From positions 62,001 through 126,000 of IMG/VR virus record IMGVR_UViG_3300012931_000759: a DNA stretch of 64,000 nucleotides; one strand, 5' to 3'. Under the pieces are notes generated by a model, which was given only the letters and a program-made list of their open reading frames with translations, was not told the DNA's origin and did not search any database. The position numbers and the translations under genes are program-made. This document shows positions 176 to 62,106 of this stretch, piece by piece; the stretch's first letter is position 1; each line of letters starts with the position of its first letter.

Positions 176-246
176 CGCGCGATAGCTCAATTGGTAGAGC
201 AAGCCCTTGACCGGGCGGGATCCGGGTTTCGAGGCTCGGTCGCGCA
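176..246 (+). pseudogene. degenerate tRNA-like element upstream of the Ubl operon
   Basis: GCGCGA/TCGCGC acceptor-like stem, canonical D arm TAGCTCAATTGGTAGAGC, GCCC/GGGC stem with 6-nt loop TTGACC, T-arm-like CCGGG-TTTCGAGG-CTCGG; loop sizes non-canonical. Confidence 0.55.
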
Positions 247-260
247 CTAGGAGAAAGACA

Positions 261-4329: not shown

Positions 4330-4405
4330 AGGCCCATAGCTCATCAGGAAGAGCGCCTGTCTTACAAGCAGGAGGTGGTCGGTTCGAGTCCGACTGGGCC
4401 TACCA
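4330..4405 (+). tRNA. tRNA-Val(TAC)
   Basis: complete cloverleaf, CT-TAC-AA loop, encoded CCA. Confidence 0.95.
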
Positions 4406-4467: not shown

Positions 4468-4659
4468 ATGTTCGGAGAACCGGAGGATGTCGAGGGCGAA
4501 TGCAACGCCCGCCTGTACATAGCCGACAATTTCGGGGACAACCACGCCACGATGCGGTGCCAGCTTTCCAAGGGCCATGATGGATCGCACCAGGAGGTGT
4601 TCCATCGCGACGGCGGCGAGGTGCGCGTGACCTGGGAAGGCGACGAACGCGAAGACTAG
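4468..4659 (+). CDS. hypothetical protein
   Basis: GGAGG RBS, 63 aa, fills the gap between tRNAs. Confidence 0.6.
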   Translation: MFGEPEDVEGECNARLYIADNFGDNHATMRCQLSKGHDGSHQEVFHRDGGEVRVTWEGDERED

Positions 4660-4748
4660 CCCCCGTAGCTCAATGGTGGAGCGACAGCCTTATAAGCTGG
4701 GAGCGTCTGATAAACGCAAGGTTGCAGGTTCGACTCCTGCCGGGGGCA
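4659..4748 (+). tRNA. tRNA with TAT (Ile) anticodon and long variable arm
   Basis: GCCCCCG/CGGGGGC acceptor, CT-TAT-AA loop, V-arm GCGT-CTGATAA-ACGC, T arm GCAGG-TTCGACT-CCTGC. Confidence 0.88.
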
Positions 4749-4764
4749 CGAGAGGCGGAAAAAA

Positions 4765-8884: not shown

Positions 8885-9007
8885 TCAGGGATAGTTCAAG
8901 GGTAGAACGGACGGCTGTGGGCGTTCCTGCGGCCAGGGTTGTGGTGGGTCGGCACCGCCGATGCCCCTAACCGTCAAATGGGGGTTCGAATCCCTCTCCC
9001 TGAGCCA
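8885..9007 (+). tRNA. tRNA-Asn(GTT) interrupted by a 49-nt insert (8919-8967)
   Basis: TCAGGGA/TCCCTGA acceptor, G73, CCA; removing 8919-8967 restores GACGG-CTGTTAA-CCGTC. Confidence 0.85.
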
Positions 9008-11998: not shown

Positions 11999-12016
11999 AA
12001 ACAATGGTTTTATAAT

Positions 12017-12106
12017 GGAAGGCCCGTCAGGCATTGGTGCCCTGTGCGCGCCCGCTAAGCGCGTGGGGATTAACCTCCCCTAGCAGTTCGATTCTGCTGC
12101 CTTCCG
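12017..12106 (+). tRNA. tRNA-Ser(GCT), non-canonical C8/C33
   Basis: GGAAGGC/GCCTTCC with G73, CC-GCT-AA loop, V-arm GGGGA/TCCCC, T arm. Confidence 0.8.
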
Positions 12107-12221
12107 ATGGATTTTGGTGGGTACATTTTGTGTTGGTTTTAGGTGTGCGGCTCGAATTTGCGTGGGTCTGAAATATGGTTCCGTCTATTCAACTTATACA
12201 CCCACCACCAAGGAGAAAAAC

Positions 12222-47142: not shown

Positions 47143-51243
<4,101 letters not shown>

Positions 51244-54608: not shown

Positions 54609-54693
54609 AAAACAGGAACTATATTGGCCGCATGTCTTGGGATTCCACATAGATAGAATGTAAGGCAGACTAGACTTGGAGGTCCGCCGTCAC

Positions 54694-57600
54694 ATGGTCC
54701 TGGCCGCCATCGTTATCAATCAAGCTGGCAAGCCCCCAGGCCTGCCCAGCCAAAGCAGGGATGATCTGAACCTGGGGACATCCGTGTCCCTGACGAACAA
54801 TGACAATACGGGCATTGTCTCCTGGCTCTGGGAGTTTGTGTCTGTGCCGGTTGGATCGTCGGCCGTGATATCTGGGTTGGCGCTGCCCTCTGCGTCATTT
54901 GTGCCGGACGTGCGCGGATCCTATTTGATCCGGCTGACCGTGGACGGATCGCCGAGCAATCCGGCGATGGACACTAGGATCGCAGCTGTCAGGACCGCTT
55001 TCCTCGGTATACGTAAACCAGCAACATCCGAGCAGTTACAGTTTGACCCGGTGGACGGCTGGTCGGCCGCGCAGCAGGCGATGATCGACGCAATAGATAC
55101 CGACGCCGCGCTCAGCCTGAAGAGGACGGGGGCCAACTCCCCGACGGCAGACATCAACTGGGGCGGATACAGGATCACCGCTCTTGGAGGTTTACAGGAC
55201 GAGGGCTCCCTGAGGCTGGGTGAGACGGTCGACCCATCAACCATATCCGACAAGGGTTTTGTCTACGCCAAGGATGACAGCGGGGACACCGAGCTCTTCT
55301 ACATGGATGACGGCGGAGCAGTCGTTCAGATCACAAAGGACGGGCAGCTCGACGTCCTTAGTTTACAGGGCGACACCCTTCCTACCAAGGCGGCCGACGG
55401 GTTTCTGAAACGAAATGCGGCGAATTCCGCGTGGGAGGAGGTACCGTACGGTACTACATCCAACACAGTATGCCAAGGCGATGACAGTCGCCTGTCGGAT
55501 TCCAGACCGCCAACAGGAACTGCTAGCGGACAACTGGGTGGTACTTATCCTGGGCCAGACGTTCGTGGTTTGAGGGAAATTTCAGGGCCTACGCTACTAA
55601 CACTAGGGGCCATCTCGGATGGGCAGGCACTCGTTCGGAATGGTTCGACGATTGTCGGAGCTCCGCTGAGCACGGGCGGAATGGTCAAGATCCGCGTGGA
55701 CGATGTGGCTGACGGCTACCTACATGACAAGCTGCTTACCGGCCAAGGACTCAGTTTTGCCATCGGGAATCCCGGTGGGAATGAGACGTTAACTATTGAT
55801 GCATACGGTGAGACTAAGGTCAGCTCGGCCGATACGACTTTAGGATACCTGTTCGACAAGCTTCAGCCAGGTGTGGGCATCAACTTGTCGAAGCAGAATC
55901 CAGGTGGTAATGAGACTATCCTTGTCTCGAGTACTGCCAGCGGCACTGGCGGCTTGGTTAAAGTTCGGGTTGACGATGCGACCGACGGATATTTGTATGA
56001 GAAGTTGCTTACCGGTCCCGGCCTGAAATTTGCCATCGGGAACCCTGGCGGTAGCGAGACGCTGACTATCGATGCCTATGGTGAGGCCAAGGTTAGTTCG
56101 GATGACACGACATTCGGGTACCTGTCCGACAAAATTGTAGCCGGGGCAAACATAACACTGAATGTGTTGAGTCCCGGTAGCAACGAGACCATACAAATTG
56201 TGGGATCGCCAAGCAACACGCTAGGCCAATCCTACAACCAAGGCGGCCCAGGCGCCGGAAGGGTTATTTTGGTCGACGCTGGCCAGGTCGAGATGAACGC
56301 AGCTGGCGGCAGCGCTTTGAAGCTGGATGGTTATCTTGGGTTTACCGAGATTGCGATTCCCACTTCAGTGGCCAACCGAGGCTTCGTATATGTCGTGGAT
56401 GACTTGGGTACGGCCGAGCTGTGCTACCGGGACGACCAGAATCGCACGATCCAAATCACGAAGTCGGGTATGATCGACGCCTCCTTTGTGAACGCCGACA
56501 GCTATCAGGCCAAGGTCAGTTCGGTCGACACAACTTTTGGATACTTGTTCAACAAACTACAGCCAGGGGCGGGGATCTCATTGGCGAAGCAGAGTCCCGG
56601 CGGTAACGAGACTATCCTGATTTCGTCCACGGCCAGTGGTACTGGCGGAAAAGTCAAAGTTAGAGTGGACGACTTGTCGGATGGCTACTTACACGGGAAG
56701 CTCCTGACCGGTCCTGGCCTGAAGTTTGCCATCGGGAACCCCGGAGGCAACGAAACGCTCACCATCGACGCTTACGGCGAAACAAAGGTGAGTTCGGACG
56801 ACACAACGTTCGGGTACCTGTCTGACAAGATTGTAGCCGGGGCAAACATAACGCTAAATGTGCTGAGTTCCGGTAGCAACGAGACCCTCCAGGTCGTGGG
56901 CTTGCCAAGCAACACACTCGGCCAATCCTACAATCAGGGCGGCCCAGGTGCTGGGCGCGTAATCATGGTTGATGCCGGAGCAGTCGAGATGGATGCCGCT
57001 GGTGGCGATGCCCTGAATTTGGATGGCTATCTCAGTTTCGCAGAGATCCCGACACCGGTGTCGGTAGCAAGCCATGGTTTTGTGTATGTTACGAACGCCG
57101 AGGGCGTGGCCGAGTTGTGCTATCGGGACGATGACAGCCGCACGGTTCAGATTACGAAATCTGGGATGATCAACTCCTCCTTCGTGAATGCTGACAGTTA
57201 CCAGGCAAAAGTCAGTGCGACTGACACAACCCCAGGCTACCTACAGACAAAGATCTCGGCGGGTGCGCATCTCCTGGCCACCAAGTTAAACTCAGGCAGC
57301 AACGAGTTGCTCAACCTAGCGGTTGATGTAACGAATATCGACGGGTACAAGACTAAAGTAAGCGCGACTGACACCACGACGGACTATCTGTTCAATAAAC
57401 TTCAAGCCGGAAGCGGCATAGGACTTGTGAAACAGAATGGCGGCGGTAACGAGAATATTCTTATCTCGTCGACAGCTACAGGTACCGGTGGCAAGGTTAA
57501 GGTCCGAGTGGATGACGTGGCTGATGGATATCTCCACGCTAAGTTATTGACTGGCCTAGGATTGACGTTCGCCATCGGAAACCCAGGTGGCAACGAAACG

Positions 57601-58830
57601 CTCACCATCGACGCTTACGGCGAAGCAAAGGTGAGTTCTGGCGACACGACGTTCGGATACCTACAGGACAAGGTTTCTGCCGGGTCACACATTACGGCCA
57701 CCAAATTGAACTCTGGTGGGAATGAATTGCTTCAATTGGCTGTCAATGTAGCGGGTTTTGACGGCTATAATATGAAGGTAAGTGGAACTGATACTACACC
57801 TGCCTTCTTACAAAATAAGATCTCGGCAGGTGCGCACATTGTCGCCACAAAGTTAAACTCTGGCAGCAACGAGTTGCTCAGCCTGGCGGTCGATGTTACG
57901 AACATTGATGGGTACAAGACCAAGATCAGCGCCACTGACACGACGACTGACTATCTACAGGCGAAATTGGCTGCTGGTAACAACATTGTCCTGACCAAAA
58001 ATAACCCTGGTGGGAACGAGACACTTACGATCGCCACTGCCCAGATCCTGAAGCTTGACGAGCAGGTCGCCGATCCCGTACAGTTCCCGAACGATGGCTA
58101 TTTGTACACCAAGGATGACACCGGAAACACTGAACTATTCTATAGGGATAGCTACGGTAACATCATACAGATCTCCAAGGTTGGCAGGCTAGACCTTCCG
58201 GATGGCTATATTAGCTTCAGGTACGACGAGATGCCGCCTTCCTCGACGACGGGGAGTGAGACCGCCATGACGCTGGCGGCCGTACCGGTCGAGGTACACG
58301 CACTTCATGTTTTCCGGAATGGCGCCCTGATGCGTCCGGTTAATGTACTTGGTCCGAGCAGGCAGGAGTATACTCTGTCTGGGGACCAGGTGTTGTTCCA
58401 GTCGACAGGCAGTCCAGGAGACTGGTACTCTGCCATGTACATCGACGGATACATGCTAGTCGGGGCCGGAGGTAGCGTCAGACAGAACGTCGCCATGGCG
58501 AACAACCAGAGCACGGACTCGTCCTCCGATATCGTAGTTGGCACGTTTCCGATCGCCGCCGGAGACTACCCATCCAGGACCACCAAGTTCCTGGCCACGG
58601 CCTTCGTGACCGGCGCTGGCTTGACCGGATACGTGAAGCTGTACAATCTTACCGACAACGTGCTGGTGAGTTCGTTCACGTTTACCGGGGTGGCGACAGC
58701 CAAGCAGATCTCGTCAGCTCTGAACCTGCCGGTTGCGGAGAAGATATATGAGATCAGGATCAGCGTGACTGGGGGCACGGGTCCCAGCGATCGCGTTGTG
58801 TGTATGTGGGCCGGACTACAGATCGGCTGA
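54694..58830 (+). CDS. large repeat-rich tail-fibre-like structural protein
   Basis: GGAGG RBS; PKD-like N-terminus; many KV..DGYL..KL..G..NPGGNETLTI repeats; ends VCMWAGL. Confidence 0.75.
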   Translation: MVLAAIVINQAGKPPGLPSQSRDDLNLGTSVSLTNNDNTGIVSWLWEFVSVPVGSSAVISGLALPSASFVPDVRGSYLIRLTVDGSPSNPAMDTRIAAVRTAFLGIRKPATSEQLQFDPVDGWSAAQQAMIDAIDTDAALSLKRTGANSPTADINWGGYRITALGGLQDEGSLRLGETVDPSTISDKGFVYAKDDSGDTELFYMDDGGAVVQITKDGQLDVLSLQGDTLPTKAADGFLKRNAANSAWEEVPYGTTSNTVCQGDDSRLSDSRPPTGTASGQLGGTYPGPDVRGLREISGPTLLTLGAISDGQALVRNGSTIVGAPLSTGGMVKIRVDDVADGYLHDKLLTGQGLSFAIGNPGGNETLTIDAYGETKVSSADTTLGYLFDKLQPGVGINLSKQNPGGNETILVSSTASGTGGLVKVRVDDATDGYLYEKLLTGPGLKFAIGNPGGSETLTIDAYGEAKVSSDDTTFGYLSDKIVAGANITLNVLSPGSNETIQIVGSPSNTLGQSYNQGGPGAGRVILVDAGQVEMNAAGGSALKLDGYLGFTEIAIPTSVANRGFVYVVDDLGTAELCYRDDQNRTIQITKSGMIDASFVNADSYQAKVSSVDTTFGYLFNKLQPGAGISLAKQSPGGNETILISSTASGTGGKVKVRVDDLSDGYLHGKLLTGPGLKFAIGNPGGNETLTIDAYGETKVSSDDTTFGYLSDKIVAGANITLNVLSSGSNETLQVVGLPSNTLGQSYNQGGPGAGRVIMVDAGAVEMDAAGGDALNLDGYLSFAEIPTPVSVASHGFVYVTNAEGVAELCYRDDDSRTVQITKSGMINSSFVNADSYQAKVSATDTTPGYLQTKISAGAHLLATKLNSGSNELLNLAVDVTNIDGYKTKVSATDTTTDYLFNKLQAGSGIGLVKQNGGGNENILISSTATGTGGKVKVRVDDVADGYLHAKLLTGLGLTFAIGNPGGNETLTIDAYGEAKVSSGDTTFGYLQDKVSAGSHITATKLNSGGNELLQLAVNVAGFDGYNMKVSGTDTTPAFLQNKISAGAHIVATKLNSGSNELLSLAVDVTNIDGYKTKISATDTTTDYLQAKLAAGNNIVLTKNNPGGNETLTIATAQILKLDEQVADPVQFPNDGYLYTKDDTGNTELFYRDSYGNIIQISKVGRLDLPDGYISFRYDEMPPSSTTGSETAMTLAAVPVEVHALHVFRNGALMRPVNVLGPSRQEYTLSGDQVLFQSTGSPGDWYSAMYIDGYMLVGAGGSVRQNVAMANNQSTDSSSDIVVGTFPIAAGDYPSRTTKFLATAFVTGAGLTGYVKLYNLTDNVLVSSFTFTGVATAKQISSALNLPVAEKIYEIRISVTGGTGPSDRVVCMWAGLQIG
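55681..58040 (+). repeat. intragenic tandem repeats of ~40-45 aa
   Basis: alternating KVRVDDxxDGYLxxKLLTG and KVSxxDTTxGYLxxK units; near-identical long blocks at ~55950-56500 and ~56640-57200. Confidence 0.85.
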
Positions 58831-58883: not shown

Positions 58884-59498
58884 ATGACACTCAAATACGA
58901 CCAGTTGGCCGACGCATTGGCCAAACTTAAGTTCCCGGAGCAGGGGAGCGATCCTACGCCGTATGCGAACGACGGGTACATGTACTCGAAGGATGTGGCC
59001 GGGGTCACCGAGCTCCATTATATGGACGACAGCGGGGATATCACTAGGCTGACCGACGACGGCTATGTGGGTCCGCACCATAGGCTACTGTCGGTCCGGA
59101 CAAGGGTTGGTGATCCGGCGGCCGATCCCCCGAAAGGGTTCCTGTACACCAAGCTCAGCGGCGTAGGCCAGGTCGAATTGTTCTATATGAACGGTTCCGG
59201 CGGCGTGTCGCAGCTCACGGCGGATGGATATCTCGATGTGGGTAAAGCGCACGACGACAGCTTAGATGCAGTCGGAGGTGAGACCTATCTTGCTCTGACT
59301 GCTGCGCCGCAGTTTGCCTCTGGGAAAGCCTCGGGTCGTAAACTGGATGTGTACCGCAATGGCTTACTGCTGAAGTGGGCGGCCGCGCCTGTCGGCAACA
59401 GTCAATGGAAATACAACGCTGGAGCGCAGCAGGTTGAGTTTGGAGGATCGCTGGAAGCCACAGATTGGATCCGGGCGGTATACAAATCGTACTCCTAA
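58884..59498 (+). CDS. putative structural protein sharing modules with the fibre genes
   Basis: two GYxYxKD..ELxYMD modules and a VYRNG domain. Confidence 0.65.
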   Translation: MTLKYDQLADALAKLKFPEQGSDPTPYANDGYMYSKDVAGVTELHYMDDSGDITRLTDDGYVGPHHRLLSVRTRVGDPAADPPKGFLYTKLSGVGQVELFYMNGSGGVSQLTADGYLDVGKAHDDSLDAVGGETYLALTAAPQFASGKASGRKLDVYRNGLLLKWAAAPVGNSQWKYNAGAQQVEFGGSLEATDWIRAVYKSYS

Positions 59499-61677: not shown

Positions 61678-62106
61678 ATGAGAAAGATTTTTCTGATCTT
61701 AGCAATCCTGGTCGCGTTTGCGGTCGGATCAGCGTGCTCGCGTAAAGTCACGCAAATCACTCCGACGAAACCCACTATACAGCAAAAGACCGAATTGTCG
61801 CAGGATGTCCCAGTTCTCAAGCCCCGATGGACAGTGTCTATCGTGGACCATTGGCTCGTTCGGCGCCCATCGGGCCAGGTCAAGGACCTGGTTGCTATCA
61901 CGTTCGTAGTCAAAAACACGGCTCCAAAGGACGTTAAGGTCCGGGTTATCTGTAATTTCGCCGATGACGGATCCCTGTTCGGCGAGAGTATTCCGCAGAG
62001 GATCGGCGCCAATTCCGATGCCAAGTTGATGGTGCGGGGATTTCGGCGTTGTCCGGATGAGCTCAGCCGGGAATCGTTCGACTGCCGCGTCGAGCCGGTG
62101 AGCTAA
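61678..62106 (+). CDS. putative lipoprotein
   Basis: signal peptide with GSAC lipobox-like motif. Confidence 0.65.
   Translation: MRKIFLILAILVAFAVGSACSRKVTQITPTKPTIQQKTELSQDVPVLKPRWTVSIVDHWLVRRPSGQVKDLVAITFVVKNTAPKDVKVRVICNFADDGSLFGESIPQRIGANSDAKLMVRGFRRCPDELSRESFDCRVEPVS

Follow-up and report, generated by a model that had tools for sequence, protein, structure and literature searches.

tRNAs with extra arms and the reading of AUA

AUA is the hardest sense codon for bacteria to read, and its decoding normally requires the essential enzyme TilS, which converts the CAU anticodon of a tRNA-Ile to one with lysidine (L) in position 34. A few bacteria do without lysidine. In Mycoplasma mobile, some lactic acid bacteria and Bacillus suppressor strains a tRNA-Ile with the anticodon UAU decodes AUA as isoleucine (PMC3575796; PMC3919564). 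These tRNAs are ordinary class I tRNAs with a short variable (V) loop, and they face two problems, the recognition of U34 by isoleucyl-tRNA synthetase (IleRS) and a possible misreading of AUG. IleRS from Escherichia coli does not efficiently charge tRNA-Ile(UAU), for which Trp905, a residue typical of tilS-bearing bacteria, is responsible; in M. mobile the charging problem is solved on the side of the enzyme, by Arg865 of its IleRS. On E. coli ribosomes UAU can misread AUG (PMC3575796). The identity of bacterial tRNA-Ile rests on A73 and on the anticodon loop with G34 or L34, A35, U36, t6A37 and A38, to which the minor determinants C4-G69, U12-A23 and C29-G41 are added (PMC9976931).

UAU anticodons are also found on tRNAs with a long extra arm outside the Leu, Ser and Tyr isotypes. 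For example, the nev-tRNA-Ile(UAU) of nematodes are eukaryotic tRNAs with Leu-type class II bodies, which are leucylated in vitro (PMC3333845; PMC4300185). The allo-tRNAs (PMC5389517; reviewed in PMC7609411) are defined by an 8/4 or 9/3 acceptor/T-stem geometry and by G73 or U73 (Ser identity), and have a long D stem with a tetraloop. UAU is their commonest anticodon, and they come from soil and Acidobacteria metagenomes and from phages. In the abundant allo-tRNA-UAU group odd five-stem junctions were noted, and because six variants converted to CUA failed in a Ser-specific reporter, a non-translational role was suggested for this group (PMC5389517). Finally, in archaea such as Haloferax and Pyrococcus, LeuRS, a class Ia synthetase and sister of IleRS, reads bases at the tip of the variable arm of tRNA-Leu as identity elements, although these bases do not copy an anticodon.

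The tRNA-Ile(UAU) gene of a jumbo phage

The gene considered here lies in a window of 64,000 nucleotides (positions 62,001 to 126,000 of IMG/VR record IMGVR_UViG_3300012931_000759), which is part of a 340,392-bp viral contig with 55.7% GC, rated about 84% complete. A sequence-only reading of the window had described an otherwise clean tRNA with anticodon TAT, G1-C72, C2-G71, A73 and a paired V-arm on a class II body, and had inferred either a TilS-independent AUA reader or a Leu-charged tRNA that mistranslates AUA and possibly AUG. The observation holds. ARAGORN calls tRNA-Ile(tat) at 4659-4749, the Rfam tRNA model RF00005 scores 4659-4748 over its full length at 61.0 bits (E 2.8e-11), and the minimum free energy (MFE) fold is a five-arm cloverleaf in which all the named features are present. 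The only blemish is an A27.G43 mismatch at the top of the anticodon stem. "Class II body", however, is a misdescription, and the key feature had been missed: the extra arm is a 4-bp stem with a 7-nt loop, CUGAUAA, which is letter for letter the anticodon loop of a tRNA-Ile(GAU), and it is followed by an ordinary 5-nt variable loop (Table 1).

Table 1. Features of the tRNA-Ile(UAU) gene and of one further tRNA gene in the window (window coordinates)
Position	Strand	Feature	Sequence and remarks	Evidence
4659-4748	+	Whole tRNA gene, position 1 to discriminator A73	CCA is not encoded; the next bases are CGA	ARAGORN; Rfam, 61 bits; family covariance model, 84.2 bits
4659-4665	+	Acceptor stem, 5' strand	GCCCCCG; pairs with 4741-4747; includes C4-G69	Sequence; MFE fold; ARAGORN
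4668-4682	+	D arm	GCUC-AAUGGUG-GAGC; 4-bp stem, 7-nt loop, class I in type; includes U12-A23	Rfam; MFE fold; ARAGORN
4684-4700	+	Anticodon arm	ACAGC-CUUAUAA-GCUGG; loop 4689-4695, anticodon UAU 4691-4693; A27.G43 mismatch; A29-U41 pair	Rfam; ARAGORN; aligns with the anticodon arm of the 72-nt tRNA-Ile(UAU) of relative G001
4701-4718	+	Inserted hairpin block (anticodon-mimic V-arm)	GA spacer; stem GCGU (4703-4706); loop CUGAUAA (4707-4713), G-A-U at 4709-4711; stem ACGC (4714-4717); then A	MFE fold; 18-nt gap relative to the G001 tRNA; aligned to the family V-arm by the covariance model; family stem co-varies and loop GAU is conserved
4719-4723	+	Variable loop	AGGUU; identical to that of Karamvirus tRNA-Ile2 and of the G001 tRNA-Ile(UAU)	Alignments with these tRNAs
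4724-4740	+	T arm	GCAGG-UUCGACU-CCUGC	Rfam; MFE fold; ARAGORN
4741-4748	+	Acceptor stem, 3' strand, and A73	CGGGGGC plus A	ARAGORN; A73 in 100/100 long-V UAU tRNAs from viral contigs
8885-9007		tRNA-His(GUG)	Insert of about 50 nt in the anticodon loop	Missed by ARAGORN in default mode

The gene starts on the last base of the stop codon of a small upstream ORF and ends 16 nt before the next ATG, in a same-strand run of genes and tRNAs. Since scans around the gene revealed no promoter or terminator signal above chance, it is probably co-transcribed and processed. Several other tRNAs of this phage carry inserts of about 50 nt, but these are located in the anticodon loop and are unrelated in sequence to the hairpin, and the reading of the latter as an intron-like insert of the same sort was rejected. 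GyrB, ribonucleotide reductase (RNR) and UDP-glucose dehydrogenase of the phage all carry LAGLIDADG inteins.

The tRNA has no Leu, Ser or Tyr anticodon, and its 4-bp D stem with a 7-nt loop differs from the 3-bp D stem and long D loop of Leu and Tyr class II tRNAs. From the allo-tRNAs as defined it differs in its 7/5 geometry, A73 and canonical D arm. Of the features of a bacterial IleRS substrate it has A73, but the decoding loop has U34 instead of G34 or L34 (A35, U36, A37 and A38 are present), and the full G-A-U-A-A set is found only in the hairpin loop. Of the minor determinants C4-G69 and U12-A23 are present, whereas the UAU arm has A29-U41 and the hairpin a C-G pair at the equivalent place; none of these is conserved across the family described below. 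When the hairpin was removed and the anticodon masked, the nearest neighbours of the tRNA were a mixture of Arg-UCU, Thr-UGU, Met/Ile2-CAU and Ile-GAU, and the comparison was thus not informative on the isotype.

A family of long-arm tRNA(UAU)

An exact 30-mer spanning both loops of the gene had no match in viral contigs, and a loose 14-base two-loop pattern gave 119 loci, none of which had both stems, so that these were chance matches. blastn against GenBank phages returned no full-length relative but only generic tRNA 3' halves: positions 45-91 matched ordinary tRNA-Ile2/Met genes of T4-like phages, in which the GAU arm lines up with their real anticodon arm. The 8-kb neighbourhood had no close phage relative, RNR gave no related viral locus, and DnaE gave only one, the contig G001 (see below). 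However, a pattern demanding both loops plus the T loop found three more genes in unrelated large viral contigs (L121, L122 and L123), the stems of which are completely different.

An unbiased pattern (UAU loop, 26-34 nt, T loop) found at least 120 loci in viral contigs, from which 100 unique well-formed genes were parsed, all with A73 and all with a 7/5 acceptor/T geometry. The same pattern in contigs of a one-genome-per-species set gave 22 well-formed genes, of which 15 have A73 and 13 of these the GAU arm; they come mostly from Acidobacteriota and Proteobacteria MAG contigs. Two subgroups of long UAU tRNAs in viral contigs with a different topology and without GAU (D regions TATCGGC and GTTCC...) were set aside, which left 91 unique members with a mini or canonical D arm, mostly in viral contigs and some in MAGs, all 7/5 and with A73; a mini D arm with a tetraloop occurs in one subgroup. 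In 82 of the 91 the extra arm is a stem of 3-5 bp (34 distinct stem sequences) closing a 7-nt loop composed of Y, A (68) or U (7), G, A, U, then U (55), A (15), C (9) or G (3), and then A (62), G (14) or U (6); nine members lack the motif. Taking one representative per distinct acceptor stem the count is 57 of 64, with a binomial tail of 1.8e-53 even when any loop offset is allowed. In all, at least about 160 members were seen. One is from a cultured phage, Sinorhizobium phage Phosso of S. meliloti, where it is annotated simply as tRNA-Ile(tat), and a paper on another Sinorhizobium jumbo phage lists tRNA-Ile(UAU) among its phage-only tRNAs (PMC11242549). For L228, a member with a canonical D arm, no match was found in GenBank phages.

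RNAalifold on a MAFFT alignment of 51 sequences, from which seven members without GAU had deliberately been left out, recovered the V stem with 13, 28 and 12 compensatory double changes at its three core pairs, while G-A-U stayed at least 90% conserved. It did not draw the anticodon stem, owing to gap placement on its 3' side, but parsing by segments showed at least 4 of 5 pairs in every retained member. A covariance model built from 47 members, excluding the present gene and the three other CUGAUAA-type genes, scores the gene end to end (model positions 1-89) at 84.2 bits (E 4.8e-18) with the hairpin aligned as the V arm, against 52 bits for the next tRNA in the window. The architecture is therefore a family trait and not a tandem duplication unique to this gene.

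The GAU arm is coupled to the UAU anticodon. In genuine class II tRNAs from the same viral loci (Leu 19, Ser 9, Tyr 4) the V-loops are almost all 3-5 nt long and 0 of 32 contain GAU. Conversely, when viral contigs were searched for the commonest V-loop, CAGAUUA, plus the T loop with the anticodon left free, 107 of 109 long tRNAs retrieved had the anticodon UAU, and so had 67 of 69 from loci not seen before. No description of a GAU-loop arm on tRNA-Ile(UAU) was found in the literature searched, although most subscription journals were not covered and a previous description is therefore not excluded. The main text of PMC5389517 does not mention a GAU motif in the arm; some sequences called allo-tRNA-UAU may overlap with the mini-D-arm subgroup, an overlap that we could not establish. 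The failure of their CUA-converted variants to insert Ser would be expected if such tRNAs are Ile-specific.

Which arm decodes, and what AUA means in this phage

The close relative G001 (442 kb, 43.9% GC, DnaE 80% identical) has an ordinary 72-nt tRNA-Ile(UAU). When the two are aligned, the D arm and the AAGGUUG junction coincide and the difference is one clean 18-nt block, the GAU hairpin, so that the tRNA is a class I body with a hairpin inserted ahead of a normal V-loop. Most family loops have A at the equivalent of U33 and U at that of A37, which excludes decoding by this loop in most members; the UAU arm thus decodes and the hairpin is an accessory. The CUGAUAA of the present gene is a minority form that is a complete anticodon-loop copy. 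At the position syntenic to the gene, after tRNA-Glu, tRNA-Val and the small ORF, G001 has only a tRNA remnant.

In 316 ORFs of the phage ATA amounts to 8.5 per 1000 codons and to 16% of the Ile codons, at a GC3 of 0.655. Whether ATA positions align to Leu or to Ile in homologs had been proposed as a check with the sequence-only reading, and this comparison was made. tblastn of all ORFs against G001 gave 218 proteins at a median identity of 59%. Excluding G001 positions that are themselves ATA, the residues opposite ATA (n = 369) were I 33.9%, V 21.4% and L 13.0%, those opposite ATC (n = 1734) I 53.6%, V 20.8% and L 9.4%, those opposite ATT (n = 656) I 50.6%, V 22.9% and L 9.0%, and those opposite the Leu codons (n = 185-2156 each) I 4-6%, V 3-4% and L 59-77%. 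A further 156 ATA codons align to ATA in G001, and GyrB relatives show the same trend. ATA is therefore an Ile codon here, and a tRNA(UAU) inserting Leu would damage the phage's own proteins. It should be kept in mind that this shows what the codon means and not what the tRNA carries, since aminoacylation was not assayed. The phage has no other tRNA-Ile, no TilS-type gene, no IleRS and no other class Ia synthetase; positive controls passed in all 14 reference genomes for each of those searches.

A possible role of the GAU hairpin

Of the two alternatives of the sequence-only reading, the TilS-independent AUA reader is supported and the Leu-charged mistranslator is not, so that its interpretation was right in part. 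That the tRNA is real and belongs to the family, that the GAU loop is conserved and coupled to UAU, that ATA is Ile in this phage and that the phage encodes no Ile-specific helper follows directly from the analysis, whereas the function of the hairpin is inferred. Membership in the family is almost certain and decoding of AUA as Ile is likely. In the explanation we favor, which as a whole is only somewhat more likely than not, the gene encodes a functional tRNA that reads AUA as isoleucine without the need for lysidine. Since ordinary bacterial IleRS recognizes G34 or L34 and charges UAU tRNAs poorly, the hairpin would present a surrogate GAU "anticodon" that gives the tRNA isoleucine identity with the host IleRS, while the true UAU arm decodes AUA on the ribosome. 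The phage, whose ATA usage is substantial, would in this way supply its own AUA decoder in a host in which AUA decoding is limiting.

That the hairpin acts through IleRS is tentative, and we consider it somewhat less likely than not. No charging, expression or modification data exist, and the geometry is awkward: IleRS is a class I synthetase that approaches from the D-arm side, and the tip of a 4-bp V-arm lies far from where the anticodon normally sits, so that direct reading by the usual anticodon-binding pocket would need an alternative docking mode or fold. An alternative fold or a flexible C-terminal domain remains possible. The common loop, CAGAUUA, lacks the t6A37 determinant that matters for bacterial IleRS and is only a partial mimic. 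The nine members without the motif, and the UAU subgroups of different topology that lack it entirely, also have to be considered, as does G001, which manages with its ordinary tRNA-Ile(UAU), indicating that the hairpin is not indispensable in every host. The host of the present phage, and hence its IleRS type, is not known. The archaeal LeuRS mentioned above is nevertheless a structural precedent for the proposed mechanism.

The conservation of GAU and its coupling to UAU show that a sequence-specific partner exists but do not identify it. The hairpin could instead be a handle for an enzyme modifying U34 or U36 of the UAU anticodon, as intron-dependent pseudouridylation does for eukaryotic tRNA-Ile(UAU), for a factor preventing the misreading of AUG, which would be useful considering that UAU can misread this codon (PMC3575796), or it could be a decoy or shield against a host tRNA-targeting nuclease; AUA would still be read as Ile. 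The A and U at the equivalents of U33 and A37 in most members weaken the loop as an IleRS mimic and thus speak for such a partner. However, that exactly the anticodon of the major tRNA-Ile sits at the anticodon positions of a 7-nt loop, usually with C in position 1 and A in position 7, would be an odd coincidence for an unrelated partner, and no candidate phage-encoded enzyme was identified. We regard this possibility as unlikely, though it is the most serious competitor.

The other explanations are very unlikely. For the CUGAUAA subtype only, the tRNA might be two-headed, with either arm stacking under the D stem and offering UAU (for AUA) or GAU (for AUU/AUC), or the GAU arm might be the real anticodon arm and the UAU arm the insertion. 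The layout is indeed one of two tandem units of one spacer base plus a 17-nt arm, the second arm is followed by a canonical V-loop and in its 3' part aligns with the true anticodon arm of Karamvirus tRNA-Ile2, the loop has the equivalents of U33, A37 and A38 and a C29-G41-like pair, and a separate tRNA-Ile(GAU) is lacking. Against this, the G001 alignment makes the GAU hairpin the inserted block, the covariance model aligns it as the V-arm, 68 of 82 family loops have A at the U33-equivalent, L122 and L123 of the same subtype also carry ordinary tRNA-Ile(GAU) genes, and the stem is only 4 bp. Charging by LeuRS (or SerRS or TyrRS), with mistranslation of AUA and perhaps AUG as proposed for nematode nev-tRNA-Ile(UAU), could be argued from A73, which is shared with tRNA-Leu, from the indifference of LeuRS to the anticodon and from the leucylation of the nematode tRNAs, but it is at odds with the Ile-like ATA positions, the class I D arm and the 7-nt loop with its conserved Ile anticodon triplet; nor did the CUA-converted long-arm tRNAs of PMC5389517 insert Ser, although those may not belong to this family. 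Least likely is a non-functional recombination or duplication product of two tRNA-Ile genes, which the tandem-arm look, the remnant in G001 and the absence of expression data might suggest. All stems are intact apart from one mismatch, the model scores are high, the architecture recurs in very divergent sequences with compensatory changes, and the gene is the only tRNA-Ile of a phage with substantial ATA usage.

Implications

UAU-anticodon AUA decoders of isoleucine are already known, and the exceptions to the requirement for TilS described so far needed a co-evolved IleRS. What distinguishes the present family is the conserved anticodon-mimic arm, which annotation pipelines that label these genes tRNA-Ile(tat) do not note. 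If the tentative IleRS reading is correct, a widespread phage tRNA family would solve the problem within the tRNA itself, with the aminoacylation signal and the decoding anticodon on two different arms of one molecule, which would be a new principle in tRNA identity and a natural way around anticodon-based recognition. It would also explain a large set of odd long-arm UAU tRNAs that earlier work suspected were non-translational, and if the hairpin really confers Ile identity regardless of the decoding anticodon, it could offer a portable identity tag for engineering tRNAs. Phages would use the hairpin to bring AUA decoding into hosts without depending on TilS or on the host's IleRS type, and the finding would thus bear on how jumbo phages become independent of host codon usage.

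Inserts and inteins in the phage genome

The tRNA-His(GUG) gene carries an insert of about 49–52 nt in the anticodon loop; it is scored by Rfam at 51.7 bits and is missed by ARAGORN in its default mode but found with the option -i. Similar insert-bearing tRNAs, among them those for Lys-UUU and Gly-UCC, lie outside the window on the phage contig (G000). The inserts are too short for group I introns, fold into hairpins and are unrelated to the GAU hairpin of the tRNA-Ile(UAU). Protein genes are interrupted as well: that for GyrB by an intein with a LAGLIDADG endonuclease domain, and those for ribonucleotide reductase and UDP-glucose dehydrogenase also by inteins.

Coordinates of further features (G000, phage contig; G001, relative; L392 and L397, loci of G001)
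Feature	Sequence	Position	Strand
Borderline tRNA-like match	window	176–247	+
Small Cys/His-rich ORF	window	4468–4659	+
tRNA-His(GUG) with insert	window	8885–9007	+
tRNA-Ser(GCU)	window	12016–12107	+
GyrB gene with intein	window	47146–51243	+
1384-aa protein with TRAM domain	window	54676–58830	+
tRNA Lys-UUU with insert	G000	57982–58117
tRNA Gly-UCC with insert	G000	58988–59126
UDP-glucose dehydrogenase with intein	G000	148971–151799
94-nt tRNA with AUG anticodon	G000	234178–234271
Ribonucleotide reductase with intein	G000	314577–318983
tRNA remnant of the relative	L392 (G001 near 67.4 kb)	about 1160–1236	-
72-nt tRNA-Ile(UAU) of the relative	L397 (G001 80337–80408)	337–408	-

Other tRNA-related features and neighboring genes

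A borderline tRNA-like match (28.8 bits against a gathering score of 29, and 25 bits to R1, the covariance model of the long-arm tRNA(UAU) family) is not called by ARAGORN. The tRNA-Ser(GCU) gives a match to the tRNA-Sec model that is below threshold (32 bits against 47), and outside the window ARAGORN calls a 94-nt tRNA with an AUG anticodon ("His atg"). The only Pfam match of a 1384-aa protein is a TRAM domain, an RNA-binding domain often found in tRNA- and rRNA-modifying enzymes.

The small ORF (about 63 aa from the ATG, with a GGAGGA ribosome-binding site upstream) has a stop codon that overlaps base 1 of the tRNA-Ile(UAU) and is conserved in the relative G001 (67% nucleotide identity); the longer GTG start at 4375 would overlap tRNA-Val. 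In G001 the position syntenic to the tRNA-Ile(UAU) holds only a tRNA remnant, with an intact T arm and 3' acceptor strand but no matching 5' half, and the upstream ORF there is longer. The ordinary 72-nt tRNA-Ile(UAU) of this relative has the anticodon loop CCUAUAA, with C rather than U at position 33.

Long tRNA(UAU) genes without the GAU loop

A separate group of long tRNA(UAU) genes was found in the viral loci L204, L170, L152, L139, L212, L172 and about 12 more. These genes have only about 7 nt (UAUCGGC) between the acceptor and anticodon stems and a V region such as AGAAACCGUAGCGGU; the D-arm-like pairing seems to enclose the anticodon arm. All have A73 and none has GAU. A second small group has a 10-nt D region starting GUUCC. 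In the loci L187, L194, L266, and L339 the tRNA(UAU) genes have a canonical D arm, but their V-loop is CUAACAA, CUAGCAA or CUCGCAA instead of NNGAUNN, which may be a second V-loop type.
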